From NCBI GenBank assembly GCA_965637545.1, contig OZ281494.1:11718001-11782000 (forward strand): a stretch of 64,000 nucleotides of DNA, written 5' to 3'. The position numbers were made by a program, and so were the translations under genes. The notes under the pieces are model-generated. The model was not told the origin of the DNA and did no database searches. It saw nothing but the letters and a program-made list of their open reading frames with translations. Origin of the DNA: Phallusia mammillata. Lineage: Eukaryota. This document shows, piece after piece, positions 3 through 34,000 of this stretch. Each line of letters starts with the position of its first letter. Within the stretch, counting starts at the first letter, position 1.

Positions 3-3000
3 CACTATTTTGCCACTCAAGAAAACAAAATACCCTTAACTGAAAATAACCTGATTCCTGGAACAATAATGGCTGCGGTATATTCTCAGGATCAAGGAAT
101 TTATCGAGCACAGATTCTTGATGTTGATGGAGAGTCCTCCACAGTAAGATATATTGATTATGGAGACAGTGAACAACAAGAACGAGTGAACATGTTTGTG
201 CTACCAAAGCAGTTTTGCGTGTTAGAGTATCAAGCTATAGCTTGCTCACTCCAAGAAGTAGCTATTTCTCCAGATCTGTGTTCACCCAAGCTGAAAAAAG
301 TGCTTACCAAATGCACTGCTAATGGTATCCTGGATATCACTGTAATAGATCACAAGTTTGACTCCACTGTTCAGTTTGAAGTCAAAGCACTTTGCGATGA
401 CACCAACATCTGTATTTTCCTTTGTAATGAGGACTTGGCTGTTGCAAAGCCTGAAACCATTAAAAATGCGGTTGAAGATAGTGTGAAACTTTGTGATCCA
501 GAAATATGTTTGGGTAAACCTTACAAAATGGTCATTACCCATGTTGATGATGATGGAAAAGTTTATCTGATGGATGTGGATAGCACTGCATCACTTGACT
601 TACTGATGAATGAAATTGCAGCTTATTGTAGCAGTTCAGATGCAGAAGATGTGGTGTATATTACTGCAGGGATGCCTTGCTGCGCTCTATATGATGTAGA
701 CATGATGTGGTATCGGGCTAAAGTTTCAAAAGTGGATGGGGACAATATCACTGTCAAATATGTGGATTATGGAAACACTGCAGTAACAACAGCTTCATCA
801 TTGAAGAAGTTGCAGAGGGAACATGCAAAGTTGCCATGTCAAGCAGTTCAAGGCAGTTTGTCGACTTGTATGACTAAAGATCGAATTGAGACACTGAAGG
901 AGCTTACTGATGAAGAAGTTGAGGTCGAATTTACAAAAGAGCAACCAGGCAATAAGTATGCAGTAAATATTGTTCATCATGAAAAACACTTGTTCTGTGA
1001 TGCTCTGACAGATAGTAATACACAACAAGATGTCTACAAAGATGAAATGATGAAATTTAAGAAATATGATTTACAAGTAGGAAGTCCGGAAGTGATCACG
1101 GTTTCACATGCTCTGCCATCAGTTGCAGGCACCGACCAAAGTTCCAGTCTAGAAAATCTATACTCACCATGCGTTTCTTTAGGAACATTTGTGAAGGTCA
1201 ATGTTTGTTTCATTGAGGACCCTGATTGCTTGTGGGTGCAGCAAGATTGCAATAAAAAGAAACTTTTTACCCTAATGTACAGCATGAATACCTACTATTC
1301 GCTGTTTGCTAAAGATCAAGGTTGCTTGGATGAGACTCGAACAGACAAGCTGTGTTGTATAAAGCTGTGTCATGTTGACAATGTGGAAGACTGGTATCGA
1401 GGCAGGATCCTTTGTAGTTATGGCAACACTGTTGAAATCAAGTTGATCGATTTCGGGAATGATATATCTGTCAATCGCGATGAGGTCAAGGTATTGGCTC
1501 CACAGTTTTTCGAACCCAAAGCACAAGCACTGAGATGTCAAATTAACAACATTCAGCCGCTGAAACAAAGGTGGGCAAAAGCAACTTTGCGCAAATTGAA
1601 AGATCTTGTACTCAGACATGGAGTCACAACCATGGGTCGCTTTATCAAGAGGCAAAATTTGACATATCACATTGACCTAGTGGTTGAAAAAGATGATCAA
1701 AAATTGGATGTTGCACAGATGTTATGTGATGGTGGCCATGCTTCAAGACTGCAACCTGTGACTGATGTTCAACTGCAAAACAGCCCAGCATCACCTGTTC
1801 AAAAGCAGCTGGATGAAAATGGCACGAAACAGGTGCCAAAATTGTTTTATCAAAGTCCAGGTATGGCAATGGTGGGTGCAGAACTTCAAGTTAATGCATG
1901 CACAAGTAAATCTCCAGATGAGTTTTTTCTTCAGATTGTTGATCAAGCATACCGGCAAAGATACATTAGGCTTTTTCGTAAACTGTACAACTTTTATTCT
2001 AACAAAGAGTCAGTTGCTGGACTAAGTGGTGAGATTTACGTTGGCAAACCCTGTGCTGTATTTGATAAGAAAACTGGTGATTGGTGTAGGGCTGCAATTC
2101 TGACCTTCAATGAACTAGACAATGTTACACTGTGCCTTGTTGACATTGGAAGAATAACTTTTGCGGCGGTTGCTGATCTTTATGAAATTAGTGTCGAACT
2201 GGTCAGTGCTGAACCACCAGCTGCACTTAGATGCACCTTGCAAGGCACTGTGTATCCAACTGGGGGTGAATGGAGTGATGATGCTGTTGAATTGTTTCAG
2301 GGATTTTTCCGACAAAATACGCAGGAACTGGTGTGCACCATCCACGGCTGCTTAGGAGACACTATTGGTGTAGCATTTATGTGCAGTCTCAAGACACCCA
2401 GCACAAATATAGCTGTAGAATTGATTAAAAGGGGATTTTGTCAACAGATTCCAGTGATTGGTACGCTTGCTCCTCCCCTCTGGCTCAAGTCTTACATTTA
2501 CACCAATTTAGATGTCACCCGAGGAAAAGAAGATGTCTTTCACATCACACATGTTGAAAACAGCAAGTTGTTCTATTGTCAACTAGAAAGAAACTTTGCT
2601 GTGTTCGACCAGATGATGGACAAACTTCAGGATCACTGCTTACACGACAATTCCCCTCTGATGTCTGTGGAGGAAATTACACAGGAAAGCATGTGTTTTG
2701 CAAAGTTCCAGAGTGAACAGTGGTGCCGAGCACATTTTGTCTCAACATTGCCTGATGGAAATGTGCAAGTTCTGTTTGTGGATTACGGAAATGTAGGAAG
2801 TGTCTGCTGGGGAGAGATTAAACGGCACTCTGGTAACTTGTTTTACCAAGTTCCGATTATGGCTCTCCCCTGCTGCTTATCAGATACAGTACATGTTCAA
2901 ACAAATAGTGAGCATTCCCAGCAAATTTGCAGTAGTATGAAGGAAAAAATTCTAGAGAAACTGTTCACTGGCATTGTCACAGGCTGCACCAACGGAAAAC

Positions 3001-6000
3001 TGCACCTCGATTTGTTTGAAAAGGGAAAACGCATCAATGATGAGATTGTGGGCAATCTTTTACAACTGCAAGCACATCCAGTAAAGACCTCTTCAAGCTC
3101 AAGTTTGGATACTGATGAAGACATTATTGGTTCTCGACTCCATGCTGAGCTATCTGATGCTTTTTTTCTTCGCGTTGGCAGCAAAGAACCTGTTTTAGTT
3201 ACAAATTGCCTGAATCCTCGTCATTTCTATCTTCAACTCTGTCGTTTAAAGATGGACTTGCATCAATGTAAAGAAGCAGTTGATGGATTCTACACAGCTG
3301 TACGAAATTCTGACTACCCTGTTTTTGAATTAAATCCTGGTAACACAGTTTGTGCCTGGCACGAAAAAACTACAACATGGTGCAGGGCTACTGTGTTAAG
3401 TGTTGCTCACCCGACAGATGAGTTTGTGGATGTATTGTATGTTGATACAGGAGACTATAGCAAAGTTGACAAAAACATGCATGTAAAGCAACTGGTTGAA
3501 GAAATGTTGAAATGGCCTAAAATGTCTGTTTCATCTTCTCTTGCTGGAATTCAACCAAAACCTTTGACCAAGTGGTCACCAGATGCAATAGCCCTTTTCA
3601 ATAGTGCCACTGAAAATGGTTCTTTATGTGCAAAGTTTTTACACAAAGATGACTCTGGGACTTGGATGATCAAACTTTATTCAGATGATGTCGACATTGC
3701 TCATAAATTGGTTGAAAATGGCTTTGCCTCCTGGAATGAGGAAGAGTGCAGAGCATTTGACATTCATCCAGTATCCCTTGCACTGAAGTCAACATATCTT
3801 ATGCCAGGGAAGACTGATGAGGTCTACATCAGTCATGTTGATTCTCATGAGATTATCTTCGTTCAGAAGGCCGAGACTTACAAAAATCTTGAAAAAATGA
3901 TGGCTGACATCAACAAAGGTAATGAAAAGTTCGAAAAATTATACAAAATCCCAAATGCTGGGAGTATATGTCTTGCCAAGTATGAAGTGGATGGGCTACT
4001 GTATCGAGCCAGAGTTGCTGAAAGGATTTTATCCAATTACATAGAAGAAGCTATTTTGTTTGTTCAGTTTGTTGATTATGGAAATGCAGCCAGCCTATCA
4101 GTTGACAAAGTGTACCAATGCCCAGCCAAATATTTAAAGGAACCAGAGTTTGCTGTTCGATGTAAAGTTTTAAATGTACCGTCTGGGTTGGAACAAAATG
4201 AGGTTATATGCAAACTTGGAGACCTGTCTACATCTGAAGATATCACCATACTCTGTTCAACCAACTGCCTTGATTCTACAGAAAACTGTCATAAGGTTAA
4301 CTTGAAAGTTAAAAGGATGGATGAAACACCACTGTCATTGCCTGGTTTTTGGATGGGTAATGCAAAATCTGATGCAAAGCCGTCAGTAAACAATGATCTG
4401 CCTTGCTATAAGGAAATGGAAAACCTGGAAGGGCTGTCAAGCAAGCAAGTTTACATTTCCCATGTAGTAAATCCTGGAGATGTGTACTGCCAGTTGTCAG
4501 AGCACTGTGACCAACTAGAAGTTCTTTCTAACAACATTTCAGCATACTTCGCAGAACATGCTGATGATGCAAATGACAAAATATCCTTACTTGAAGCTAT
4601 TTCAGCCGGCAGCTCATGTGTTGCAAAATTCAGCTCTGACGAAAGCTGGTACAGAGCAGTTGTAATCAGGATTCTAGATGACATGGTGTTAGTTCGTTTT
4701 GTTGACTTTGGCAATGAAGAAACTGTTGCATTGTCTGATATTCGGCACTCCAAAGTCAGTTTCTGCTTGTATCCCATTCAAGCAATTCACTGCAACCTGA
4801 TATCTGTGCCCAGCAGTGAGGGTAAATGGAGCAAGGAACAGATCAATGCATTTGATAGGAGGGTTGCTGCATTGGAGCTTACTGCTACTTTTCACAGCTT
4901 TAATGAAGAGGAAAAGATATATCAAGTAATGTTGCGACTGCCTGACGGCACATTGCTCAATAATGAGTATGCAGATCAGTCAGAACAGGACAACAAAACA
5001 TCTCCAAACGAAAGTCATTTGAACAAGAATACTAAGCTACAAACCGAACCCGAGGCTAATGGAATAGCTTCAGAGGAAAAGGTTATGACAAACTGCCTCA
5101 ATAGTGAAAACGATTTAATCAACAGACTTGAAATTGAACCTGGCTGTGTAGAGTCTGCATACATATGCTTCGCTGAGGACCCAGGAAATTTCTATACACA
5201 ACTTGCAAACTGTGAGGAAACATTGGAGAGCATTCAGCGATGTGTAAATGCGGATGCTTCAGAAGATGTAGTCAGTGATGTAGTTCTTGACTCCTATTGT
5301 GTGGCACAAAGTCCAGAAGATGGGCAGTTCTACCGCGGAAAGATTATTGATGTTTACCAACCTGAAGCAACTGTGTTTTTCATTGATTATGGCAATAGGG
5401 CTTCTGTCAAATGGAGTAATGTGAAACCAATTTCCGCAAAGACTCTGGAATTTTCTGCCCAAGCTATTCCCTGCTACTTGGCTAATCTCCCTGTTTATTC
5501 AAGTGAGGCAGCCATCAAGAGGGCTATTGATCTTTTTCTCAGCACAACACTTGACAATAAAATCACAGTCACATTTCTGGAGCTGAAACCGAATGGTCGT
5601 TGGAGAGTTAACATACAAATTGATGACCATGGTTTATCTCAGCAGTTACAGTTCGTTGAAGAAGCCAACATTAATGAGGTTACCACAAAACCTGGTGTGA
5701 TTCAAGTTGCAACGGAATCAAATGAAGTTGATGCGCCTGGTTGCCAATCCTCTGACACTTCAAGCAATCTCGAAGATAATGCCAGCTCGGTATTGGAGAG
5801 TGGCCTTGACAGTGAAGCTGACAAACCATCTTCTCCACATCTTTCCCCAATTTCATCTTCAACAACTGTTAGTCGAAAAAGCAGATTTGATGTATGCAAT
5901 GAACATGATAAACAACTACCAAAGAGGGAATTCTGTGATGGTGAAATTCACAAAGGAATCATAATCTTAGCCAGCAGCACCGCTCATTTCTATATACGTC

Positions 6001-7722
6001 TTGATAGTGATCCCAGCATCAAAACACTGATGGAGGATATACAGTATCCTGCAGAAGGTGACAACATTAAGGGTTTGTGCATTGCTAAGTTAAAACCAGA
6101 GGAAAACTGGCAGCGTGCGGAGGTCGAGAACAAAAGTGATGGCACCAAAACTTTATTTTTTGTTGATACAGGCAAAGTAATGAACAGCAAAAGGTTCTTG
6201 GTTGCAACAATACCTGATAATCTTGTGAATATTCCTGCTTCTGCAATTTGCTGTAGTTTACTGGACACTGACATTTTGAATGGTGATGAACATTTTGCAG
6301 GTGATGTTGTTGGCCAAAATGTGTTGATAACATTCCGAGCAGTTGAAACATATTATGTTTCAAACTTTACAATTCCCAAATGGCGTGTGGAGCTTTTGCT
6401 TCTTACACAGGTGCCAAGACATAATCCTAACCTCAAAACAGAAAAATCTGACACTGAACCTGGTGGGTTTGACCCCTGTGCAGTTTCTACTCCCCTGCTT
6501 CCAGATATACTGATTACAGGTGTTGACGGAGTGAAAAAGCCTCAAAACCAGACAAATGACTTTCAAGCTGTTGAAGGAAATCACAGTTCTGTACATGCAT
6601 TATTGCTGCAGCTGAAGAACATGATAGTTCAAGAAGCACCAAATTCAAAACTGCTTGAACAAACAGAGCATATCCTTACCAAAACTGCCAATTCTTCTGA
6701 ACAACCCATTCACCCATCAACAATTGGTGCAGATGGCGATAAGAGTTTTGCAACCACTGAAGCTCAAGAAGATCATAAGCGCCCTAGCTCGCCCCTCAAG
6801 GATGCAATTGAAAGTCCATGTAAAAAGCCAAGATTGGATCAGAATGTATTGGTTTCCCCAAACACCAGAGATCAGCTGTTTTCCAATGAATGGTTGACTG
6901 TTTCTCAACTCTTGCCAAAAGCCCCTATTTGTGAAGGTGATGTCCATGAAGGCTTTGTGTCTCATGTGAATACGATTCAGAGCTTCTACGTCCAACCATA
7001 CTTTCTCATTGCTGACAGAGAGCCCTGCTCTATCATCAAACCTGCAGAATCTGCCGAGGTATCTATGCTGTGCTTGTTTAAAAAAGATAATCAAGATGAA
7101 TATGACCGATGTGTAGTTCTCCATATTGGATGTGATTGGTTTACAGTGGGCATGATTGATTCAGGGGAAATAATTGAAGTTGAAAATCAGCAGCTTTTCA
7201 CAATGCCAGATGAGTACAAATCTTACCCACCGTTGGCTATACATTGCTCTCTTTCTCTGGAAAATCATTTAGATGAAAGCTCAGATGATTCTTTGAAGCT
7301 GTTTAAAAGTTTGACTGAAGGTGAAAAAAACCTACGAGTTGAGTTCATAAACCCCCCCTCTGATAATTCAACAAAGTGGACAGTCAAACTGACCATTGAT
7401 TCTTCAGATGTCTCTGAACTTTTGGTAAACACCCTATCTACCAAACCTAACCAACCCACAGATGAAAATGTTTGCCCAGCAAAGGTTGTGAAGCCAGCAA
7501 GAATTTCTGGTGGACCTTTATTGGATATTGGCCCCACCTTCCGTAGTTTGGCTTCAGTATCACTGCCATCCATCTCAGAGGAGGATGTTGAATCAGTAAA
7601 GGGCAACACTTACATTATTAATCCCCTTCCAGTCCCAATGTCATCTGAGTCTTCACTTTCTGTTATATCAGACAGTGTCTTTGTGTCAGAAAATGAAGCA
7701 AGTGAAATGGATCCTTCACCAG
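3..7722 (+). CDS. Giant Tudor-array exon (>7.7 kb)
   Basis: ORF 69..7748 reads through a CCAG|GTAAGA donor at 7722/7723. The last residues of the ORF (KSNILKS*) are intronic. Confidence 0.9.
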
Positions 7723-10684
7723 GTAAGAGTAACATTTTAAAATCTTGATTTGTTTGCAATCATTTTCATTACTTTGTGCCTAATTTTTTGTTTTGTGATC
7801 CAGAAACCAAGCTTAGAATAATCTTTTAATTTTTTTTTGTAAGGAGATTACAATTAAATCTTGAACACAAAATAAATATTTTATTGTTTGTTTTTGTAGA
7901 AATACCGAAACAAATATCATGGAACATATACCACAGTTCTTCTGAGAAAACTCCAAATGAAATTGATCCTCTGAGGTATATCCTATAAGTACTATTTTAT
8001 TCATTTCAACTTAATGCTACAAAATACCTTTAGTCACAGCCAAGATGCCAAGTTTCCTTCTACTGAAGATAAAGAAGCAGGTAAAGATGAAGGTATGTTT
8101 ATCATGAAGCTGTTTCAAATAGATTTGTTAAAGTTTAAGCAATCATTTTTAGAACAACCTGTTCTGTGTTTGGAAACTGAGATTGACCAACTAGTCAGAG
8201 AACTTGTTAATTCCTCTCTGACACCAAATGAGGTATTGGCTATTTGTTTGATGACTATGAACCTGTTTTCTATGCGATTTTATTTTATAGAAGTTTTCTG
8301 TTTTTGAGGAACCAGAAAAGCAGAGTCCTATATTAACAGCGCCTGTACCTCTTGGGAATAGGTATTTGTGATTTTTTCTTTAAGAAAAAGTTTGCTATGC
8401 TATCATAACGTTTTTTAGGTTAAATACAAATAAATTCAAACAATGGCAAATCTGTTAATCACTTAATGAACTCTTGATTATGGCAAAAAAGTTTTTGTGT
8501 GTAGAAGTAGAATCAAATTGTATGTAGAATACCAGATCAGTCTTTTAAATGCATTTTTCTGTGGTTTTGAAAATGGCACAAATAAATATCGAATTAAATT
8601 TAACAACCACTTATATAAAGCTTGGTGGCCTCCAATTCTGAGGATGATGAAGACGAGGATAAAAATGTGCAAGCAGATAATTCACAAATGATTGAAGATG
8701 TTGACTTTATGAAGATTGCTGAGAATATTGTTCAACAAGTTTGCAACAAAGCTGTGGCAATTGTGGGAGAGACGTGCAGCTGTGCTTCTATTGACATTTT
8801 AAAATCTACTACTCAGTCAGAGAATACAACAAATCCTAATTGGAAAACACTAGAGAATGACAGCAACGAAAATGATGTTTCAAACCAAACAGCTGAATCA
8901 GCAAACAAGGAAGCAGATAGTTCTGAAGAAAAATGTGATATTGATGTTGAATTTAATACATCAGAAAAGATGACAAGTGAAAAATTAAAAGAAGATAGTG
9001 AAGAAGTTTTTCTCAATCAAGAACAAATTACAAGTAGTGAAAACTTGAAAGCAGAACTAAAACCAGAAAACAGTGTTGTGGATTCTAATATTGCCCAAGA
9101 AGTTGCAAAAAAAGAGGATACTGAAGAAACAAATGATGAGACAGGACTAGTTGTGGAGATTGCATTGAATTTGTCAGAGCTTACTGATTCAAAATGTGAA
9201 TCCAATGACAGCCATCTGTATGAAGAAAACAAAAGTTCCTGCATAACAGTTTTGGTTGAGGAGGGCCCTGACCTGACTCCCAATCCTGTTTCACAAATTT
9301 CTCTTGACTTGGATTTGGAAACTAGATTGCCATCGTTTGTAACAGCTTTTCAAGGTGAAGATGTAAATACTGAAGCACCAAAGGTGGAGGTGGAGGTTAA
9401 TGAGGGAGATGTTGAATTTCCTGAGATTGTTGTGAGTGAATGCAAAGGTAAAATGACTTTTGCTGCAAATTTATGTTTTGATTTATCATCCCTTTGTTAG
9501 CTTAAAATATTATTTGTGTTATCATGCAAAAATTTAAATATACATAAAAAACAGTTTTGTTAAAACTTTTGATGAAACAAATGTGTTTTTTTTGGTTTGA
9601 AAGCATATCAATGTTTAGATGACATCAGTACCAAAACAACTGACATTGAAGCTAATGAAGAAAATGCTGTTCAAGAAGCTATTTCAGGTTTTGTTACACC
9701 ATCCTTTGCATTCTTTTGGTAACTAAATGTCATTCTTTTGGTGTTTATTTTAGTTGCAGGTAAAATAACCGAGGACGTTATTAAGGATGCCATACAAGAA
9801 AGTTTTAGTCCTGATGCAATAAAAGGTTTGTAACTGGATTTTAATACATGTGTCTTATCCCTATACAGCAGTGGTTCCCAACCTGGGGTTCGCGGACCCC
9901 CAATGGGTCCGTGAGATGGTTTTAGGAGGTCTGTGGAGGCAAACTTTCTTAGTACCATTAACCAGCAGTACAATATTGTTAAGTTCCCAAACCGTTTTTA
10001 CAATCCTGCATACAAATGCAAACTGTTATTTAACCTTTGGTTTAGAAAACTTTTTCTGTGACTGTTACTTCCATTGTGACATCACAACACACATGAACAA
10101 TATAACTTATAGTGCTTTGTTTCAAGTATTGTACACCAGAAAATTTATCTCTTCGTTGCATTGACTGCTACAGTACAGAACTTTATTAAGATTCAAGGAC
10201 TCTGAAGGTTGATTAAAATTCTGCCCCCCAAAAGCCGAAAGTATAACAACGTATAATGCAGGAAAAGAAAAACATAACAGTACTAAATTACGTTGGGGGT
10301 AAAAAATTTATAAAAGGGGTCTGTGACTACAAAAAGGTTGGAAACCACTGCTATACAATCTTATAACTTCAGATCAGTTTCTGTCTACTCCTAAACACTC
10401 TGGAGCAAGCCAAGAACCCGAGGAAACATCAATTTACAGCACACCCCTCTCAGAGTACAATGACGGTGAATGACAAAAATTTTATCAGGGACTTAGATAT
10501 TTTTTTCAACTGCAAACGTTTGTAACTTGACTTTCATACTTTTCAAGGTGATAGAGATCGTGATACTCATGATGTCACATTGACTCATGGCTGTGATGAT
10601 AATTCTGACACAAGGAGTCCGCAAGATGACTTGTTGTTTGTCAGTGCCAGAGAAGATTCTGATAAGTCCCAGATTTTTGTGTGA
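3..10684 (+). CDS. Multi-Tudor domain protein (Drosophila Tudor / TDRD6 / TDRD15-like germ-granule scaffold), 5' truncated, multi-exon
   Basis: The frame is open from base 3 (HYFATQENKIPLTENNLIPGTIMAAVY...), so the ATG at 69 is probably internal. I count 11 extended-Tudor motifs of type C-x-A-x(4-7)-W/Y-Y/C-R-A...[FY]-[VI]-D-[YF]-G. Exons with consistent phase: <3-7722, 7900-7975, 8034-8092, 8153-8232, 8291-8361, 8621-9447, 9619-9687, 9754-9825, 10373-10465, 10548-10684 (TGA). This gives at least 3067 aa. The 8361-to-8621 junction (AAG acceptor) is the least certain. Confidence 0.9.
8621..9447 (+). CDS. Large acidic (E/D/S/N-rich) exon of the Tudor gene tail
   Basis: Matches ORF 8622..9500. 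Phase-2 acceptor ATAAAG|C and phase-1 donor AAAG|GTAAAA. It joins in frame to the downstream 69/72/93/137 nt exons. Confidence 0.75.
9869..10350. mobile_element. hAT-type MITE (482 bp)
   Basis: TIRs CAGTGGTTCCCAACCT / AGGTTGGAAACCACTG. 8-bp TSD CTATACAG / CTATACAA (7/8). Removing the element plus one TSD leaves a 57-nt intron, like its neighbours. Confidence 0.9.
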
Positions 10685-16900: not shown

Positions 16901-19900
16901 TTCAAATACTAAATCTGGTAAACACTATTTGACCTTCGGACATCAGTCAGCAGGCGAGGTGTTGTGTTGTCGTGGAACTTTCCGCGTCACCTGAGTTGCT
17001 GCTGATCGATAACCTAACTACGTCATTAGATTTTCGGAGGGAATCAAAGTCGATCTGTCAGAACTTGTTGTTACACGTTTGGTTTTATGTTATATTTTGG
17101 TTTGAGTACAAAGTACAGCCTTTGAACAATGGTGTAATTATATTTACCTTCATACGGAAGTTTGCACTAAGCTTTATTGTTTGGCCAATACAGTTTTTCC
17201 ATATATGGTTCGTTAAGTGGTTTCGACTTTGTGTCAAAGGTATTTTTTATGGTGGTTTTAGCCTTACTTAAATGGTTTCTGAGCAAAGCTAAAAAAGCCT
17301 ATAGCAGTTCATAACTATTTTTACATGGACAATTATTAAGTTTTTTTGTATTTGTAGGAATCAACACTGGAACTTATTACGCGATCGGAACCCTCCTAAA
17401 TCCGATCATGCTGCCATTTCACCCGGTAAATGAAATAATTTTTGGTGAAACGCCGAAACTTGTCGTTGTTTTCTTGTATGTTATACATTGTGATATATAT
17501 TGTTGCACTGTTTCTTAATCTTAACAGGCTTTTAACTGTTTTATCCTCAACTTTTAGGACGCTGTCAGGGAAATTGGTCAAATCGGTTTAACAATGGTGG
17601 TTGCTGGCCTCGGTGGTTCGGTCATCTGCGGTTTCTTTCTCGACAAAACAAAATACTATAAGTAAGGTTGTCTTGAAAAACGTTCACCTTCGTTTGTTTT
17701 AAGCTTGAAAAAAAATCATTGCTTGTCAGTTTGAACGTTTCTCTCGATGGTTTTTAACCCATTTCAGGATTTTTTTCTTGTTTTCAACCAGTGGCTCTTT
17801 GACACTTTTTGTAGTAATAGGGCCTATATATAAAGGAAGCAAGTCTGTGTACCCGACGTCCAATTACCCTCGTTTTATAAAACTTCTAAATCCACTGCAT
17901 GTTTTGCATTTATGTATTCGTTTTCACTAGACCCCTTCAGGGACCTCGAAACCTAGTGTGGGAATCCCTGTTGCAAATGAATGGCTATCGACTGTCGGTT
18001 AGTTCCAAACACCTCTCGTTAAGTAGAATCTTTGACCTATTTGTTTACCAACGAGTTTGGGTGGCAAAATGTAACAGCGCCGTGTTGTCTGGTCAAAATC
18101 TTAAATCTGCTTCACTGTCCTATTTTGTGTTGGCTATTTTAGTCCTTGAAGTCGTTGGGCACCGAAATGTGTTCGTTAGACGCGGGCTGTTGTTAGGCCA
18201 TCAGTTGTGACGTGGGTCGATTGATTTCAATTATAACTGACGGCTGAATTTTCCGAACTGACTCCCGTAATTTTAATTAATGACGAATCAACACATAGCA
18301 ATATTGAATAGGCATTTTTTCTTTGTAATTGGTCGAAACATACGCAATATTTTGCATGCTTGCTCAAATTAAAGGAAATAATGCTGACATTGAAATATGA
18401 GTTATTTGTAGCCTACATGTTTAAACTGTACTAAACCCCGTCGAACCCGTTTATCTTTTTTCAAAAAAAGCGGGTATGAATCACTCATCATTCTCTTGCC
18501 GTTTTGCAGCAACAAAAGTTGGATGACAATTCAAATCTTTCTTCCTCATTTAGTTGGGCGTAGTTTCTGGATATCCTTCACGTTTATGTAGTTTAGTAAA
18601 AAGTAACAACAATACAACGTTTTGGCGTGTTATCGCTCCATTTTGTTGTCATTATGTTCAATTTTTTTTTTCCTTATTGTAATGATTTTTTAAGACTTCG
18701 ACTTTTAATATTACAGGGGCACGACGGTTGGAATATATGTGCTTTCCATGGTGTTCATGTTTGTTTTCACTTTTACATTACAATTAAAACTTCTTTGGTT
18801 GGACTTCATAACGATTTTCATGCTCGGGTGAGTAACACTGCTTGGTGACGTTTACAGCCTAGCTACTTTATATGTTGACGTTTAAATCCGATTAATAAAC
18901 CTGTTTTGTGTAGCCATCCTTTAAATAGTTTTAGTCTTATTGATTTTGTGACCTTTTTTGACACAACGCTTTATATACAGCTTTTTGTGCGATTTGCTAT
19001 TTTTGGTCGCATTTTCATATACTGTACTACGAATTGACCTGCAAACAAAGTACTTATCTAGTGTTAGCAGAAGCCAAATTCGGAAGTGCGATAGCAAGAG
19101 TGGCGCCATAAGATTGTTTGTTGTCTGCAGATTTTTTATGACCGGCTACCTGCCCATAGGATTCGAGTTTGGAGCCGAACTCACTTACCCAGAATCGGAG
19201 GCAACGTCAGCAGGACTACTTAACGTTTCTGCGCAGGTAAATTGATTTATTTGTTTAAGTTCTATGCCGACTGTAATTGCCCGATAATAAAAAAATAGTT
19301 TTATGGTTTGCTAATTTTTTGTGGTGGGCTTTATATTTTAACCCAGCAGTTGCCATACTCAAATTCTCATAAGGGCCAACCTAAGATGCCGCATCGTGGG
19401 CTCATTTCAATTGCTGTAGTTGATTTTGGCGTTTTACTCAATTTAAAAGATAAATTCTTAATTAGGGCATTGCGGTGAAGCGCCTTTGTGCTGGTTCATT
19501 GTTTGTGCCATATCAAAAACTTCCAACACTATCAGCAGTCTTGTTGGTGCTCTATTAATAGCACCGCTGTTGTGGAGTCGGTGAAACCTGAAAGCCAACA
19601 CCTCGATATCATGTGTACACACAGTGTGTTTTCGTTTCAACAAAGTGCTTTCGACCTTTATACTATTTGGAGACAGTGTAAAAAGGCCTTCTGAACTCAG
19701 ACTTTGCCCGACTTTTGCTTTTGAAAGAAAACATTTTGTTACCAAGAAACCAAAGCAAGGTGTGATATTAAAGATATACTACAAATAAAAACAAAATGGT
19801 GTAAATTGAATCCCGGTTGGCAAACGTGCAAGCGGCAAAGTTACGCATAGCGTCCGTCGCTACAATCGTTTGTACACTGTACAGTACATCCATAGAACTA

Positions 19901-21489
19901 GGTTGCCTTTAAACATGTTGTCATATGTATGCTTCAATCGTTACTGGATGCTACACATCTTAGCTTGCATTGTGTTATCGGTATTTGTTCAATTTTGTGC
20001 ATCCAAACACGTAAACAAAATCATGTGCATCCCAAGAAGTAATGATTTCTCTCTCACAGTTCTTCGGTATTCTGTTCATTCTGGTTGCCGGGGAGCTTCA
20101 AAAATCTTACGGTATTCTGGCTGGTGACATCTTTATGTCAGTGGCGCTCTTAGTTGGAACTGTGATGACAGGTAAGCCGATTCTCACTCCGCAGCTGTTA
20201 TAGCCGCCAACAAGGCCAATATAGCATCGCGAAATCCACCTTACTGGCTACAAAACATGTCGAATCCAAGGATTTTCGAGCTGTTTTTGTGTTACGAAAT
20301 CATTCCGTGTGACGCCATGTGGGTAATACGTCACAATGGTCAAATCATCCCGCTCTTGAGAAAATCAATATTGTATCCGCAACCCTTCCCTTACAACCGT
20401 TTGTATTTAGCTGCTACCGCAGATGCTTGGGGGCGTCGCCCAATGCTACCGATTAAGAGATATGAATCTTACATGAAATCGATGCTAACCGGGTTTCCCG
20501 TTCCAAAAAAGACGTAGACAATTAAATTAGGGAGCCCACTCGAGGTTTGGCGTAATTGATTTCCATTGTTTGGTGTCAGCGATCAATGAAAGACGTTTCT
20601 TGCCGTGATTGCTCGATGTGTGGAGAAAGTTCCTTCCTGCTTGTCGATACTGAATTAACGTAAATCTGTGCATGGCGAGAAAATTAAAAAAAAAACATTG
20701 TTAAAAAAATGTTTCCGTTTTACCACAAACGCTTTAGAACGGTGGTTCTCAACTGGTGGTCCATGTTGACTTTTTGGGTGCTCGACAGGAAGTTAATTAT
20801 ATTCAATGATAAACTAGAAATAGTTGCATATTTGATTATTGATTTTTCAAAAGAAGCAAGTTTATCCAAGTTATTGTTTGTTTATTGTTAGCTGTAAACA
20901 GTTCTTGATATCACCCATCGAGATTATGTATTAAAGGAATATATTTTAAGCTAATATGCTTGTATAGGGTTCTCTCTTTATCCTTAACAATTGACTAGTC
21001 CACGATATTCATGAAATTGAACTGGTTGTCCATGGCCTGAAACGAGTTGAGAACTACTGCTTTAGAAGGACGTGCTGTTTTGTTCCGTTTTCGTTAAATC
21101 TACAAACGCATTTGTGACAAATCACTGCACACAAAGCTATGTGGTTAAGCTTTTAATGCGTGATCAAAACGCCTTTGTTTACATTTTAGTTGCAATCAAA
21201 GCGGACCTACGAAGACAGGCTGCCAACAAATCGTCGGCACTTGTAAGTATAAACATAAACACCGATTAATTTCACAAATTCAGCTTTAAACCTTTTCGTT
21301 CGTTCACAGAGTGATTGTGACGAAACAAAAGCAACTGAACTTATGCAATGTTCCAGCTTGAACCACAACGCTAATAACAATAGCAACCGCAATTATACGT
21401 CATCACCAAATCATGACGTAGACAATGATGACGCAAAGTTGATACGTCTCACATCAGCGTCGTCATGTTACAGTGCCGATACGCGGTAA
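13905..21489 (+). CDS. FLVCR: FLVCR-family MFS transporter (SLC49A; choline/ethanolamine, historically heme), 11 coding exons, about 547 aa
   Basis: Family motifs [89 protein letters not shown] and [10 protein letters not shown]. Exons: 13905-14385, 14548-14669, 15989-16130, 16515-16679, 17358-17425, 17558-17661, 18717-18827, 19131-19236, 20060-20171, 21190-21242, 21310-21489 (TAA). All are GT-AG and total 1644 nt in frame. Confidence 0.95.
20740..21059. mobile_element. hAT-type MITE (320 bp) in FLVCR intron 9
   Basis: TIRs CGGTGGTTCTCAACT / AGTTGAGAACTACTG. Perfect 8-bp TSD CTTTAGAA on both sides. Confidence 0.9.
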
Positions 21490-25091: not shown

Positions 25092-28000
25092 CTGAAAATA
25101 TAAAATAACGGTAAGTTCGGCTGGTATAATATGATTGGGTTTTAAACGGTCTTGGTTTCGGTATAATTTTATGACAGTGGAACTTTCAACACATTTGTAT
25201 CTTGACAACTTAAGTACAGTATTATGCAGTACTAGCATTTTGTGTCCAAAACATATTTGCTTAAAGGTCAACGTAGAGTACGAAAACTGCCAATAGTTTT
25301 GCCAAGAGGATGTTTATTTAAAAGAAAGAAAATGTTTCAAGGGTTTTTTTAACAAAACACAACGACACACAACAAAGAATACTTACATTGTGCAATGCTC
25401 CAGATGTTATGTGTTAGCGTGTAAGCAAGCAAAAAAGAGTGAGGTTAAATCTAATTCATGGTATACACGAAATCAAGTTCTGTTTAACTGCGATGATATG
25501 TGCATAATATGTTTAATGTGTATAATATTTGCGTATGACCTGTCTTGTGAAGTGTAGCAAAAACTCTTAGTTTTGTGAACATGGCATACAATTTTTGGCG
25601 GCAGATGTAGTTTATTGCATATTTTTAGACTGGAAGAAACGAAAAATAAAAGCGGGTCTTGCGATCTTTTAAGACACGATAAATGTTAACGCTGAAATAA
25701 GTACTCCGTGTATCGCGAGAAGATGCCACTGCCGCATGGCGAGTGTGGCGCCATTGCAGCCTTGTTGTGAGAATGAGTAGACTGAAGTTGTTGTGGTGGA
25801 ATGTGGTTGGTTGTGGTGGTGATGGTGGTGGAATGGGAACAGAAAGAGAGTTGAGCGCACAGTTAGCCAAGTCGTAGTTTTATAGGTAGAAAGATTTAAG
25901 GGTATTGTATTCTAAATGTAACCACACACTGTGTATCCTAGAGTTCACTACAGACAGAACACAAACTGATACCTTTCTCCGAAAGCGTGTTGATGTTTGT
26001 TTCAAAATTTTTAAAAAAACTGTAGGAACCTTTAAAATTTTGTCAATTAGGTAGTTTTTTGTGGTATCTAGACATTATGTATGCGTTATCTTTTTCTGCT
26101 TCATCTGAATTTATAAACGAAAATTGACAGTTTCCACTTGACCTAATGATCATCCGGTAAATGGTAGCAGTTTGTGTTCTGGAAACTAGAACTAAGCGTT
26201 ATTGGTAATTATAACGCCAAATCACATTCTCCCTGGAGCAGATCTACTTTAAATTTATATTAAAGTTGCTATTTGATCTCACCTGATGAGTTTGGACACA
26301 TATCCTCGTCATCACAGTCGTCTGGATCTGATCCCTGTGGACAAAACAAAGATTTTTTATTCAAAACAGTCGACCCTTAAACTGTGTAATCTGCAATGTA
26401 ATAGGCGGATATCTTACAAACATGTGCTACTTGATCAAACTTATAAAGTACATTTAACATTTTAAGCAAAAAGATAACACGAATTCAGAGTTGCATTGGG
26501 CTTTTTTCCTGTATGTAGCACTATTGGATTTGGCCAGAAAAGATCAATATAAGCTAAATTTAGATGACCATTGGCAATTTCATTAAAAAACACAAAAAAG
26601 TGCTGCTGGAGTACATGTATGTGTTTGACATAGCAGCAAACTTACATTTGGAACGAACGGCGTTGACTTGGTTGTTGAAAAAATGGTTAATGTGGCCATG
26701 GTGGTGGTTGGTTGCGAGATGGTTGGATTGGTTGGTGAAATGTCAGGACCACCTATTTTCGTGACGTCACCATAGAACTGAACACGGTCGTCATCTGAAT
26801 AAAGCAAGGTGACAGAATCAGAATAACACATGACAAATGGTATAACTTCTGTAGAATCACATTTAAATCTTGTTCAAGTGGTCCAAAATAGTGTGTTTGG
26901 ATAAGATCGTTTCCATTATTAAGCCAACCGTTTAGAAACGTAGAGAATGTTAACCCTTCCTTCTTCATCGTACAAGTTTTGTACAACCATGGTATTTCTA
27001 GTTTATATTAGTAATTTGAAAACCTGTATGAAACCAAACTTCTCTGTTTCACATATTTTTTTATAAATAACGATGTGTGGGAATCTTCACTTCGACTTAT
27101 TAGCTATTTAAGTGAATTGCCCATATCGGAGATAACAATAAACTTACTTCTTGCTGCGAGATCGAACACACGAACATCGTTGAAGAAAAGTCCCATCATT
27201 TGACCGACGAAAGGTTGCGTGATATCTGGGGATCGTCTGTTGCGTGTTGGTTGTTGCAACGTGGACATGGCGCTCTCACTGAGCAATCCACCGATTTGAA
27301 TAGTAGATTGCGAGTTAAATACCGAAGCCACTCGCTCTGTTAGAACATACAAAGGTTTTGCCGTGCAAAGAATTGTTTTGCTTGGTTTTGGATAAATTAA
27401 CAACATTAAGTTTGAATGGTAGTTAATTGTTTAGAATTTTGCAACAGGACAAGGTTTTTACAAAGTGATTTAATTGAAAGTCAAATAAAAAGTTATACTA
27501 ATCAAAAAATAGACTAGTGCTATGGAAGATTTAGGTTAACTAACAAAATCGTAGAAAAAGTTCTTATTGTGGTTATACCTTGTGTTATTACTTCCATGCA
27601 TTATGTTAGTTGTTGGATATTAGAAACAAGTAACATGGATGAATTGTCAGTTGTGAAAGTACTGGTTAGTAGCTGAAAACACACACACGCTCTCACACAA
27701 ACAAACAGTACACACAATCATACACACATAATCGCGAGTTAGCCAAAACCAAAAGAAAAAATGTTAGTACCTTTGCCTTGCAACCACGAATCAACCGCGG
27801 GTCGGGCAGAGGGTGCAATGGACGGGCTTGCAAGGGCAAAGCGGGAACGTGCATCCCCTACGACAAATAATAGGCAGAGTGAGTTTCACACCAATGGCAA
27901 GACACGAGCAGATGTACACAAGTTGTTGTTAGTACACCGGTGCATTGCTGCGGCTCTTCATACTGATGTGTACCAAACTAGAAGCAGGTTGTCCATACTT

Positions 28001-31000
28001 TGTAGTAAAATACGTTCTAACCGATTAATGCTTTTGGGAAATAGTACAACTCATAGTTAATTGGTGTGGGTTTTTTAAAAGGTTCATGGGAGATCATGAC
28101 GTAAATGTTATAAATTTAACCCGATGGTTCCCAACCGCGGAGGAATTTTTAAAACTGTATGGAAGGAATTTACTTTATTTTGACATGTGGTTTGTAAATA
28201 GACACTTTAGCTCAGGTAATATAATCTGTGAGGTTGATTAAAGACCCAATTTTAAATGATATTTGTATGGTTCATCCACTATGTAGTCTATCAGGGAGAG
28301 ATGACAATATTTTGAATTGTTAAGGAAGGAATTCGTCGAAAAAGTTTGGGAACTACTAGTTTAACCTATTCATCTATGCAATTTCATTCGAATGGTGAAC
28401 GATAAATTACGTTCATTTTCTGTTACTAGTTGCTAAAACTCGTCATCATTGTATAAAACCAGCATCATGTGTGGTACGGGGTATTCCTGATGAACCCCGG
28501 CGGTCATGTTAGTAAAATGAATTCGTGCAAAGACACCAGTTAGAAATGTAATCACGGGTTATTTACCAAGTTGGATTCGGATAGTAAATGCACATGCAGT
28601 TTAATGTGACTTTGAATGCCAACCTATATCTCTGTACATTTTGCGAGTTTAAAGACATGCAAGACTGCTGTTGCATCGACCTGCCAATGTTAATGCGCTT
28701 ACTGACCAAAAATTGTTTTAAAAAAGATGTTTTAGTTTTAAAAAAGATGTATTCTCAGTAGGCTGAATCATAGCACGCCAGGCCTATTAAAGGCTATACC
28801 GAAAATCCCGGAAAGGCTCCTGTAGTAAGTTCGAATTTTTCTAGCTTACGCCTTGTCATATGGGAATGCTTGGAGACCGGCTGATTCCGAATAACACCCT
28901 CAATAGGCCTGGCGTACTTTGATTTATATATGATTGTGCCGTGATAGCTGGTCTGCGTTAATGTTTCAGGGCTGATCCCAGTTGTGAATTTATGTCCATC
29001 TTAACTTAGCAGGCAGATTTCCCATAATGCGCTCAATCGATTGGCAAGTTGATCAACAGCATGCATGAAAGTCACATATATTAGCAAACGATATTGCCCA
29101 AACCTATAAGTGCGATTTGTCGCGGACTGACATAGCGAACTACTTATTCAGCTAAAATACCTTGTTCTATGCTATATCGTATACCCCTGTAAGGTTACGA
29201 GTGTAAAGAAAACACATCACACAACAGCGCGTGTACTCACCACTAGGCGTAATACTTCTCACTGGCCAGTTGTTCACCCTCATCGTGGCATTGAGCCAAC
29301 GCCTGCGAACTTGTACAGTGTGGTAACTACCGTCCGACACCGACCTTTCTTCACGGAGTTCCACAGTTCGTCCGCCACCCACGTTAAAACGAAGCGTCAG
29401 TTTGCCATTCTCCTGCAGTTGCACCAGAAACAGTGTTACTGTGTTTATTGGTATGGTTGGATAGCGTGTTATTTATTATACAGTTATGGACAAATTGTGA
29501 AAACCATGCACCGATTTCACTCAAAACACATGCGCTCCTCGGTACCTCAGACCAGCTGTCCTAAGTTTCTGCGCAAAACCAGTGTCAAAAATGCATCCAA
29601 CTAACCCATTAGCCAGGGTGAAATGGCAACCGCAGGGGGTTGAATGTGTCAGAATTGACAATCTTGAGGCATTAACGCCGAAATGCAAATTCGCTCGCGT
29701 ACTTGGAATAGTTTATCGAACCAGATCTGGCATTCAACAGTGGGAAATGTTATTGATCTTTTTTTTAAACATATGCAAAAAGGTTAACACAGCGGTCCAT
29801 CGAAATACTGGCTTAAACTGAAGCAGAGAGTGGCAATCTTCTAGGATGTGCATGCAAGAATATGTGACTCGAGATTAAGTTCGAACCCATAGAATACTTT
29901 ACGATGCACCAACCAACGTATGAGCCGTATCAAAATTTTCATGTTTCGGGGGCATGTGGGTGAACCGCTGGGTCATTCGGGGTTAAACTTTGGGCGGATT
30001 AACTTCGGATAACTAACTAACATGTGTGAAATTTTAAATAATTTAAACCACTCTCTCTTGACCAAACGTTTGGAACAAATCAGCGCTGCACAGAAAAAAG
30101 TAATATTCTATAACTGTTCGTAACTAGGTTTGTTGATAATGTGCGCATCGACTTCTGGGCCGAGGACAGCGAGAACAGCACTTGAAAAAAACGCTTACCA
30201 AACGAAATGAAGGTTAGGCGACTCTTTTGCACACGATGAAATGTATGTACGACTTTGCGAGCCTTTGACAAACTTGTTAGCTTTCACACGCACACCCATA
30301 CACGCCCACACACACACACACAGACACACGCACACTCACACACAGAAACGTGGCATTCTCAATGCAAAATCTTCTGTTAGCGGCGCCAGCAAAAATAGGC
30401 ACTTGACGTGATCCAAAAAGAAAACGTTAAGTACGCTGTAGTTCTTAACCTGTGGGTAATTTGAAATTTTGCAGGAGGTAATTACGTCATCATACGTCAT
30501 CGTCATACTTTTGTGATGTTATAGTTAAGAGATTTTTGAAAAGGGACAAATGTACCTGTGGTTGCTTTCAAGGGTAACAATATTAAAAGGTTAAGAACCA
30601 CTGAGTTAAAAAAACGCGGGCTAAAAAATTGACAACTGTTTTCACACTGCGCCACCAAGCGACAAAATTTCTAATTTACTCTGTACGGCGTAAAGCCTGT
30701 TTTCTCCTAAAACAGGGAATATGACATAAGATCACGTCAAAAGCGCCTACCGCCGCAACTTATGCAAACCATGCATTAAAAACCGACAGGCATTAATACG
30801 ACGGCCAGCAACGCCGTGCAGCATGGAAACCTCCTTACAATGCTAAGCCGAAGGTAGTCTCGGGGATTGCGCATTGCCGAGTACACTGTAAGCAGGACGG
30901 CGTCGGGAGAGCGGCTCGCAAAGGCAATGTTCAGAACGTCATAACGTACGCTATGCCCAGAGAGCTCGCACGTAATGAGACCCTTGTTGAAGAGGTAGGC

Positions 31001-34000
31001 AGAAGAGCTTATGTGTTCTGATGGTGGGCACGGTGTTTGGCGTAAAAATAGAAACAATAGCACTTTAGATTAGGTAATATAACACTAAAACGGCTATTCT
31101 CAGTCCCCGGCAAGTGATTGTAATCTGTTCGCGACAGAAAGGCAAATTTTCAGTTCACCAAGGTTTCAAGTAAGGATGGCCTATTGTGTTGATCAAGAGT
31201 AAAAATTTGGAGCTCAGCAAATTGTTCGGATCTTTTACTTTTACAATATTGCCAAAAAAACTTTAAACGTCAAATTTTTTAGCGCAAATTTAAGAGAAGT
31301 TGTACCGGTAAAAACATGCACAAACCTTTGGTAAACTTTGGGCAATCTTGATCTTTTAAAACTTGAAATTCTGAGAACAAATGGCCGAGGGACTGAGAAC
31401 AATTTTCGCCGACATATAAACTCACGATAGAGAGTTGTAGATAGTCTTGAGTCGGCGGGTTTGTGTAACCGCTCACGCGCAAAAGCACACAATTGCGCAA
31501 CGAAGTCGAAAATCCGAGCCCCAGTTTATCAGTTCTGGTGCTCGGGTAGTCGTCACGCCATTTGTACAGTATTAAGCCTGTACCGGAGCCGATACGATAG
31601 CTATGGCCCTCTGTAAAATTCACATGTTATGTTACTTACAACGCCATTTAAGGTGTTGCCGATTTTGCGCCACATAGTCAAAGCTGTATAGCCCTTTTAC
31701 AACATGCCAAAAACTGAATTGATCGAGTTAGTACTCGTTTTGGATATTTTATGCCATCTTTTTAGAAAGTTTCAAATGGTTAGCCAATTAAATAGTTTTA
31801 GGCGTACCAACTTTAAAAATCATTATTGGCATTGTCAAGGCTATGCACAATCTGAAAACGTAAATAAACAGGGCAAATGTAAAATGTTTTATAAGTTCCT
31901 GGTGATGCTGAATAAAGAAATCATGCACGCCATGCATAAGTCCACCACACCATGCTTCAAATATGGAAACTGTTCATGGTGATAGGCAGTAACACTCTCG
32001 GGAGTTGAGCTTTGTATTATTGTTATTAAAATATATAGTATATTATGTTTTTATTTCCTGGTCTTGTAGCATTCGGAAAAGGGTCCTTGATCAAACAAAG
32101 CAAAAAAGCGCCTTTTCGGACGCACTGGTCACACAAATCAGAGCAAAAAATATGTGCGAAAACAAATGTTCGCTGTAGCGTGCGTTCGTTATCACGTGAT
32201 CAACGTTCGTATCGCACACCGCAAGCGGGGTGGGTGAAAAAAGAGGGGTCATGCTTTGAGGGGTGCACACGAGCGCTGCGCCCCGAAGCTGAAAAATCAC
32301 GGCACTCGTAAAAAGCAAAATGAAATGTGTTTGGTGACGAAAGGGGAAGGCAACACACTCGCTCTCCTTCGTTTGTTTTGCTTACCGGGTAGAGTACTGA
32401 CGTCTAAATCGGCCAGCAAATAAAAAGAGTTTCTTTTGTCGCTGAGAGTTATCACTATGTGCCGTTTATTTATATTTAATGCTGGACCAAAATATGCATA
32501 CACTGTATAGTAAGTATAGCGTGGGCTTCGTTTGAAGTCGGAAACATGACGTCACAATCAAGCTACGTCATCAAAAAAGTCTGACGTCATATCTCATCTT
32601 GTTTTACAAAAGAGTTTTATGGGAAGTACAGGCAAAATTGGGAGTTTAAGTATCCATTTACGTTTAAAGTATTTTTACGAAGGACGTCCCTAGTTCAAAG
32701 TTTTTGTTTAGCACTCTTTGCACTATTGTGTACGCGTTTAACTGTTTTCAGAATAATTTTGTAATCACGCATAAATAAAAGCGAACCAAAAACTTACGTT
32801 GCTGGCAGAGTCGGCCTACGTACGACGTGAGGCTACAATCACATTTAAACCCGTCCCAGTGTTGTATGCATACTCCACCATTACTACAAGTGGTGGGAGT
32901 ACAAGCAGGTGATGGTTCTGTGCAAAAATAAAGTACACGTTCAAATTGACACCATCTAACCTTTTTGGTCCTAGGAAAAAAGATTATAAATAATGAAAAC
33001 TACCCCTCCACCCCAAAAAATCGTTTTCACAACACCCAAAATGTAGGTTTATTGCTTGTATGAGCAATCCTGGTTAGTCGGTCTTACTGAGCAAAATAAA
33101 CAGCAGTTTTATTACTTACTTAAGCACCCAGGGTTAACCTTTCCAACTGTTTGTTTTCCTCTTGGATCTCTCATATCCTGACTGACCCCGTTGACCTCGA
33201 GTGACCCCATGCAGCCTTCATATCCGGTCCTGGATGCCACTCTGTCTGGCAATTCGTATTGGTACATATTACCGGGGACGCCACCAATGTAAAATTTTCC
33301 TGCAACAAGGATACGAGTTTTTGTTTGGAATATAAACGAGTAATAAAACTGTTTGAGGTAAAAAAAAAGTCTTGTTTGTTAATAAGACTGTGTTAAACAT
33401 TCTGTGGACATTTATGAGCAAGTTTTTCGGAACGTTTTGGAAGCCACAAAGTTGCTACGATATTCCTATTGATTTACCGAACCACTTAGTTTTTTCAGCA
33501 TTACTCATAAGTGTTTTACAACCTTACAAAAGAATTTCTTCGATAACATCACTGTTTTAGTCTCAAAATGAAGGCAAACTGTGTTTTATTTGTGCTGTTC
33601 TGTTCTAGCATGAGAACATTATAATCGATTTCATCGTGGCAGTTTTGTTTGAAGGTTTAAATAAAACCTCTTAATAAAATCCACATTTGCCTACATATTA
33701 CTGTTATAAAGATATTAACCTTTCTTACCGCCTAAATCGAGGTTCTTATTGCCAACCCGTCCACCTTGAATGACTTGCTGTTTGTCGACTGTGAGGGTGT
33801 GGATGTTATCTTCCGAACGTTCAATGCGAATGTCGTGCCACGAATTGTCGTTCACCAACAAATCACCGTTTACTGTCAGAACCTTTACAAGAAAAACGAA
33901 TATAAGTTATATGGTTTAAAACAGAGGTTGTCAACTTATGGTAAAACTACTCCCAAGTAATTAATCTGGCATGCTTTGTGGTGAGTATAAGTAACAAAGA

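Follow-up and report, generated by a model that had tools for sequence, protein, structure and literature searches.

The 64,000-nucleotide stretch of the Phallusia mammillata genome analyzed here (contig OZ281494.1, positions 11,718,001 to 11,782,000; hereafter the window) contains the single alpha-neurexin gene of this ascidian, in which the N-terminal segment of the sixth LNS domain (LNS6) is encoded by a tandem pair of exons, A and B. The A/B pair is real, expressed, conserved and regulated, and it is very probably subject to mutually exclusive splicing that gives two LNS6 forms. A role of the A/B swap as a ligand-specificity switch remains putative; we regard it as quite possible rather than probable.

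The neurexin gene is located on the minus strand, from about 62726 to 23557, and spans ~39 kb. Using its first coding exon in the window as query, a P. mammillata protein of 1654 aa was retrieved (CAB3264446.1, "neurexin-3-like"; hereafter P0001), which matched the window exon for exon. P0001 showed Laminin_G, EGF and PF01034 matches, and its C-terminal tail, KDKEYYV, is also encoded by the last exon in the window. These matches and the tail agree with the layout of an alpha-neurexin, which comprises six LNS domains, three EGF domains, a single transmembrane segment and a C-terminal PDZ-binding ...EYYV. P0001, the sole member of its 90% cluster, carries exon A, and among deposited P. mammillata sequences only this A form was found and no B isoform.

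Exons A and B follow the exon coding for the third EGF domain (EGF3). Both are preceded by AG and followed by GTGAGT or GTAAGG, both begin in phase 1 and end in phase 0, and both have lengths of 2 mod 3. The peptide encoded by exon A reads GHSYRIG...QDYLQLSI after the split codon, and that of exon B reads HISSSAYLF...RDYLRLSI. An initial annotation of the window, made from its sequence, had described the two exons; their coordinates, strand, peptides and splice signals were all reproduced. It had also claimed that A and B align with each other, in agreement with the BLASTP comparison (E=9e-7, 45% identity over 40 residues) and with the finding that they are reciprocal best non-self matches by tblastn in six frames of the 64 kb window, a search in which no third copy of the exon was found. 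In silico splicing further confirmed the frame rule proposed there, namely that including both exons or neither would shift the frame: the frame was open with A alone, and likewise with B alone; with A plus B a stop appeared three codons into B, and without either exon the frame was shifted and ran into stops. Because both exons are 2 mod 3, a transcript that includes or skips the two together meets a premature stop; such aberrant transcripts would be non-productive and are probably removed by nonsense-mediated decay.

RNA evidence for the use of both exons was obtained from contigs of four runs (X16, X17, X1 and X5), which were placed on positions 27100-32960 of the window. In addition, the sampled words of exon B were all present in four RNA runs of P. 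mammillata. In X16, exon A was contained in a 244-nt contig made up of 29 nt, A and another 29 nt (depth 8.29), and exon B in a 238-nt contig made up of 29 nt, B and another 29 nt (depth 9.16). These equal flanks are the assembler signature of two alternative paths from EGF3 to the next exon, and the exon B contig contained both junctions of this exon, 32798-31017 and 30839-29412. In X17, exon A was found in short contigs of depth ~5, with the EGF3-A junction at 9.47, and exon B in an 843-nt contig of depth 8.7, in which B was spliced to the next exon, then to the cassette at the position of splice site 4 (SS4), and then to one exon more; this run therefore shows the SS4-position cassette together with exon B. 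In X1 and X5, exon A was detected at depths of 92.7 and 23.1, respectively, and exon B was detected in neither. The exon A junctions, 32798-31610 and 31426-29412, were found in X16, X17, X1 and X5. Consequently, all four junctions that the initial annotation had named as a check were present in RNA-derived contigs. The segments skipped in the contigs had, without exception, GT..AG ends on the strand of the gene. Neither an A-B junction nor a junction skipping both exons (32798 to 29412) was found in the contigs of the four runs, a result of exactly one exon per transcript that is bounded by the loss of rare forms from assembled contigs. The share of B was ~50% or more in X16 and X17 and zero in X1 and X5, the runs with most neurexin. 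The A/B ratio is strongly different between samples.

Two further observations were made on the same contigs. One X1 contig (depth 8.8), covering 31582-32650, ran unspliced from the intron into exon A, and corresponds to a retained intron or to a transcript start inside the intron. Short intronic pieces at 28080-28275 and 29844-30039 reached contig depths of up to 559 and occurred in all runs; the contigs lead on into unrelated sequence, and these pieces are probably repeats common to abundant transcripts.

In order to place the exon pair among ascidians, neurexin clusters of Ciona intestinalis and Styela clava were found with the LNS6 region of P0001 as query. The C. intestinalis RefSeq isoforms X3 and X6 have the A form (DTTYRF...YPSTRVD...QDFVQLTI), and at least nine isoforms, which are the majority, have the B form (PMHSVAFLF...RSVRYDVLNIYF...VYSAM...KDYLQLSI); XP_026689389.1 (A) and XP_026689396.1 (B) are examples. 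The Ciona locus (L001) shows the same order as that of Phallusia, with the end of EGF3 at 19603, an 18-nt microexon at 19889-19906, exons A and B separated by an intron of 141 nt, and the next exon from L001:21513. Clavelina lepadiformis also has a tandem pair (L003:28595-28794 and 28945-29126, with lengths of 200 and 182 nt) and two isoform forms (XP_076815567.1 vs XP_076815569.1). As in Phallusia, the paired exons of Ciona and Clavelina start in phase 1, end in phase 0 and have AG/GT borders. A search for further tunicate orthologues, using a profile of four full-length ascidian neurexins, yielded vertebrate neurexins almost exclusively. In vertebrate neurexins, no second exon is known at the LNS6 A/B position.

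Between Phallusia and Ciona, the B exons share 58% identity (nonsynonymous divergence, dN, 0.43) and the A exons 50% (dN 0.45); within each species, A and B share 31-34% (dN ~0.9). Synonymous divergence (dS) was saturated in all Phallusia/Ciona and A/B comparisons, and no dN/dS ratio was obtainable. In a first maximum-likelihood tree, ultrafast bootstrap support was 99% for the B clade and 90% for the A clade; after adding Clavelina, the B clade still had 99% and the A clade was down to ~80%. These comparisons indicated that the B exons of Ciona and Phallusia are orthologues, that the duplication predates the Phallusia-Ciona split, and that both copies are under purifying selection, with equal amino-acid conservation. 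The conservation of exon B in tunicates, which had been proposed as a check, was in this way found in Ciona. The positions of the exons and of the other elements discussed below are listed in Table 1.

Table 1. Features of the LNS6 region of the neurexin gene (window positions, except for those preceded by L001, the Ciona locus).
Feature	Position	Strand	Length	Remarks
EGF3 exon, constitutive	32798..32918	-		ends in phase 1 (..CAG CAA C, then gtaagt); contigs of four runs cover 32798-32917
Alternative microexon	32386..32403	-	18 nt	HVSTLP plus split codon; AG and GTAAGC flanks; EGF3-LNS6 linker
Exon A, canonical N-terminal LNS6 segment	31426..31610	-	185 nt	YPSTRTD ... QDYLQLSI
A-B intron	31018..31425	-	408 nt	one UGCAUG (G at 31319)
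Exon B, divergent alternative N-terminal LNS6 segment	30839..31017	-	179 nt	HSVRYDVLNI ... VYSAM ... RDYLRLSI
Intronic block AAUGCAUGGUUUG	30765..30777	-	13 nt	62-74 nt downstream of exon B; Rbfox-type UGCAUG
Next LNS6 exon (ENGKLTLRFNVGG...), constitutive	29241..29412	-		phase 0 start; joined to A or B
SS4-position cassette	27771-27856	-		29 aa in P0001; included in contigs of four runs
Ciona exon A	L001:20596-20771		176 nt	2 mod 3
Ciona exon B	L001:20913-21100		188 nt	2 mod 3

Regarding the part of LNS6 that is exchanged, exon A gave a PDB sequence match to the neurexin 1/2/3 beta LNS domain (E=2e-9). In LNS6 of bovine/mouse neurexin-1alpha the Ca2+ ligands are Asp1139, Val1156, Ile1208 and Asn1210, and binding of neuroligin-1 is abolished by D1139A and likewise by S1109R, which affects the core of the interface (PMC3084293). 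Ser1109 corresponds to the Ser of PSTR and Asp1139 to the Asp of DYL, with a 30-residue spacing that fits the vertebrate sequence; based on this motif match and spacing, the equivalents of both residues lie in the swapped exon. The premise of the initial annotation, that this segment carries a Ca2+-coordinating Asp and a Ser contacting neuroligin, agrees with these published data (PMC3084293), and both residues are present in A and in B. LRRTM, the other ligand it had named, had to be discarded as relevant here, since LRRTMs were not found in tunicates (PMC3933685). The S-x-R-x-D motif is kept in all A and B forms, and the D-(Y/F) motif in all of them except the two forms of Clavelina. Features specific to B are SVRYD, VYSAM, a basic residue before DYL, Leu for the Trp of Y-x-W, and A/Y-F for G-F; those specific to A are YPSTR, W, GF and N/D-C. 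The B form of Ciona LNS6, taken as an orthologous stand-in for Phallusia B, was modeled with AlphaFold (mean predicted local distance difference test score, pLDDT, 85, and 76-96 in the exon-B part; predicted template modeling score, pTM, 0.81), and the top PDB matches of the model were neurexin-1beta LNS6, with a target-normalized template modeling score of ~0.9 and E=1e-21. The B form is thus predicted to have a regular LNS6 fold in which the Asp for Ca2+ is retained and the rim is changed.

Two other alternative exons were found in this region. An X1 contig had 17 extra letters between 32798 and 31611, with a unique match at 32387-32403, and this led to the microexon, whose insertion point is the EGF3-LNS6 hinge. 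The microexon is included in X1 and in the deposited P0001, and skipped in X16, X17 and X5; besides Ciona, it is also present in Clavelina (21 nt) and in Styela isoforms. Exon A had been annotated as directly following EGF3: this junction was indeed seen, but the microexon is sometimes placed in between. As for the SS4-position cassette, a junction skipping it (27336 to 29241) was found in X5 only, at depth 7.8, and the existence of both inclusion contigs and this skip junction indicated that the cassette is alternative. The A/B swap is not an event of the SS1-SS6 type, as it exchanges the first LNS6 exon in its entirety, and this exon is located upstream of the cassette.

Since the key residues are kept while the rim and the N-terminal strands differ, the swap would most likely retune affinity or partner choice, at a site that would still be Ca2+-dependent. 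Alternatively, the swap could be real and have its main effect elsewhere, either on the EGF3-LNS6 interface or hinge and the shape of alpha-neurexin, or on folding, secretion or a cis partner. We consider this explanation rather unlikely, albeit one to be taken seriously: the exon also codes for N-terminal strands beside the EGF3-LNS6 junction, a conserved alternative microexon sits exactly at the EGF3-LNS6 linker, and the canonical Ser, Arg and Asp are unchanged in both forms. Moreover, that junction buries 832 Å2, and the hinge is the proposed pivot (Pro1085) for docking of alpha-neurexin on neuroligin (PMC3084293). However, the conserved motifs most specific to B (SVRYD, VYSAM and a basic residue preceding DYL) border the two loops of the rim with which vertebrate LNS6 contacts neuroligin.

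The choice between A and B was then considered from the intronic sequences. With their lengths of 408 nt in Phallusia vs 141-150 nt in Ciona and Clavelina, the A-B introns would exceed the size at which steric hindrance alone could exclude double splicing. GCAUG occurs 10 times in the 3.4-kb alternative region of the Phallusia gene vs 2.6 expected (P ~0.0005), which is three times the gene average. One UGCAUG, 64 nt past exon B, belongs to a 13-nt block (Table 1) that is near-identical in Ciona and located there at equal distance from B, and Clavelina has GCAUG 92 nt past the second exon. The presence of (U)GCAUG ~65-90 nt downstream of the second exon in the three paired species suggests, as a lead, an Rbfox-type enhancement of B. 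The intron that precedes the first LNS6 exon likewise contains UGCAUG clusters, at 31926-31955 of the window, L003:28244-28548 (Clavelina) and L002:49127-49447 (Styela). UGCAUG enrichment as such, also considered as an A/B switch signal, was down-weighted, since Styela, which has a single exon, shows a similar upstream cluster.

It is improbable that exclusivity is imposed, beyond the frame alone, by competing intronic RNA pairings in the docking/selector manner of insect Dscam1 exon 6. The intron after EGF3 (32657-32676) and the A-B intron (31254-31273) contain two 20-nt segments with 90% complementarity to each other, and Ciona has a 12-nt pair of the same topology (19851-19862 with 20896-20907). 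Nevertheless, the arms of these candidates are AT-rich and dissimilar between Phallusia and Ciona, several such pairs per region occur by chance, shuffled sequences gave equally good inter-intron duplex energies in both species, and the frame rule alone accounts for the protein outcome. Of the Dscam-style switch suggested in the initial annotation, the binary choice of one exon out of two was upheld; an RNA-pairing mechanism in the manner of Dscam was not supported. Two repeats were noted in the introns of the region. The intron following exon B carries an imperfect CA-rich microsatellite (30285-30354), and in Clavelina the intron from the microexon to the first exon of the pair contains inverted copies of a repeated element (L003:24194-24609 and 27533-28119; up to 185 nt, 95% complementary).

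Several points weigh against a conserved and regulated swap with functional consequences. The RNA evidence consists of assembled contigs (Logan) from runs only guessed to be RNA and free of tissue or stage labels, and the depths are assembler word depths and not read counts. Only X16 has both exon B junctions in one contig; the X17 contig with B extends 15 nt into the upstream intron and has no EGF3 junction. Styela clava has one exon and one isoform form, with no second copy in the neighboring introns, and given this single exon the tandem pair is not general to tunicates. In the tree, the second exon of Clavelina fell outside the B cluster, so that the three pairs may or may not descend from one duplication; with 60 residues, the tree gives no reliable place to this exon or to the Styela exon. 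GCAUG enrichment is significant in Phallusia only, and the upstream UGCAUG clusters, present also in single-exon Styela, may serve the microexon instead. Exon B has no PDB sequence match even at E=10. Finally, the key Ser, Arg and Asp are present in both forms, so that the functional difference could be small.

It is very improbable that B inclusion is mere background splicing at low level, devoid of a regulated role, in samples where neurexin is scarce: B was found only in runs of lower neurexin depth (9-18 vs 23-93), but in those runs it was equal to or above A, with a share of about half or more, in Ciona it is carried by most RefSeq isoforms (at least nine), and the exon is under purifying selection. 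That exon B is a decaying, unused duplicate can be counted as refuted, because although B is far more divergent from vertebrate LNS6 than A (with no PDB match at E<=10) and is missing from the sole deposited Phallusia protein and from X1 and X5, spliced contigs link it to both neighbors in an open frame, its Ciona orthologue is 58% identical and represented by RefSeq isoforms, its dN equals that of exon A (dS being saturated), and its fold model is confident; the initial annotation had given a lack of spliced reads and of conservation as the outcome that would mark such a duplicate, and the opposite was found.

Regarding other features of the locus, run X17 has a C>T change on the plus strand at window position 32878, which converts Gly to Asp in EGF3 (CSNGGVC to CSNDGVC). 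P0001 has the same Asp, indicating a coding polymorphism. The 3' end of the neurexin gene adjoins a convergent single open reading frame of 2559 aa (69-7748, plus strand).

Based on these results, the following model can be proposed. An ancestral exon coding for the N-terminal ~60 residues of LNS6 was duplicated in tandem, giving rise to exons A and B. EGF3, with or without the microexon, is spliced to A or to B, and either of them to the common downstream exon, and the frame rule together with decay of aberrant forms would enforce one of the two in the protein. The swapped segment would contribute two elements to the rim that binds ligands, namely the Ser/Arg loop and the Asp acting as Ca2+ ligand, the surrounding rim and the N-terminal strands would differ between A and B, and the swap would act beside the SS4 cassette within LNS6. 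Taken further, we tentatively propose, as a possibility on the weaker side, that Enterogone ascidians evolved a second, independent diversification of the LNS6 face in the form of a regulated binary swap; together with the SS4-position cassette and the hinge microexon this would give at least eight isoforms of the LNS6 region from a single-copy gene, with A and B having different postsynaptic partners or very different affinities for the same one, and with a stage- or cell-type-dependent choice made through Rbfox-type UGCAUG elements downstream of B.

Neurexin diversity is a central idea in synapse specification, and descriptions of it have so far dealt with cassettes inserted at fixed sites. 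In Ciona, a chordate that has a single neurexin gene, the choice of exon replaces the core of the face that binds neuroligin, and the LNS6 surface would have been diversified independently in tunicates and vertebrates. The Ciona larva, with its small and fully mapped nervous system, offers a simple and genetically tractable test of whether the LNS6 isoform instructs partner choice. From a practical point of view, the Phallusia record is missing the B isoform, and the isoform sets of Ciona and Clavelina hold an undescribed feature. The two-form N-terminus of LNS6 is already among the automatic predictions of the RefSeq sets of these two species, unremarked, and the full-text literature searched contained no report of mutually exclusive exons for any true neurexin, nor for that of ascidians. 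Thus, the raw fact of the pair is in databases but undescribed, and the novelty lies in the diversification of LNS6 by exon substitution and not by a cassette.

The ascidian swap resembles SS4 of vertebrates in that alternative splicing remodels LNS6, which in vertebrates gates partner choice, and the ascidian gene itself has, like those of vertebrates, an alternatively used cassette at the SS4 position (27856-27771). However, SS1-SS6 of vertebrates are cassettes that are either inserted or not, whereas in the ascidian swap ~60 core residues are replaced by a paralogous segment. This segment is encoded by the first LNS6 exon, upstream of SS4, and comprises the Ser/Arg loop, a single Ca2+ ligand and approximately the first five beta strands. 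The closest precedent is Neurexin-IV of Drosophila, an adhesion protein of the neurexin superfamily with a mutually exclusive pair of extracellular exons; it differs in being a Caspr/contactin-associated protein and not a true neurexin, and its exon pair lies in a discoidin domain, not in an LNS domain. Usage of those exons (3 and 4) differs between neurons and glia, and the affinity for the ligand Wrapper is higher with exon 4 (PMC3245913). Exons 7, 13 and 18 of Drosophila CadN and the Dscam1 clusters are also tandem duplicates, from which one of several is chosen under developmental or cell-type regulation (PMC3245913). In comparison with CadN and Dscam1, the choice in ascidian neurexin is binary, has no supported docking/selector RNA, and owes its exclusivity to exon lengths of 2 mod 3.

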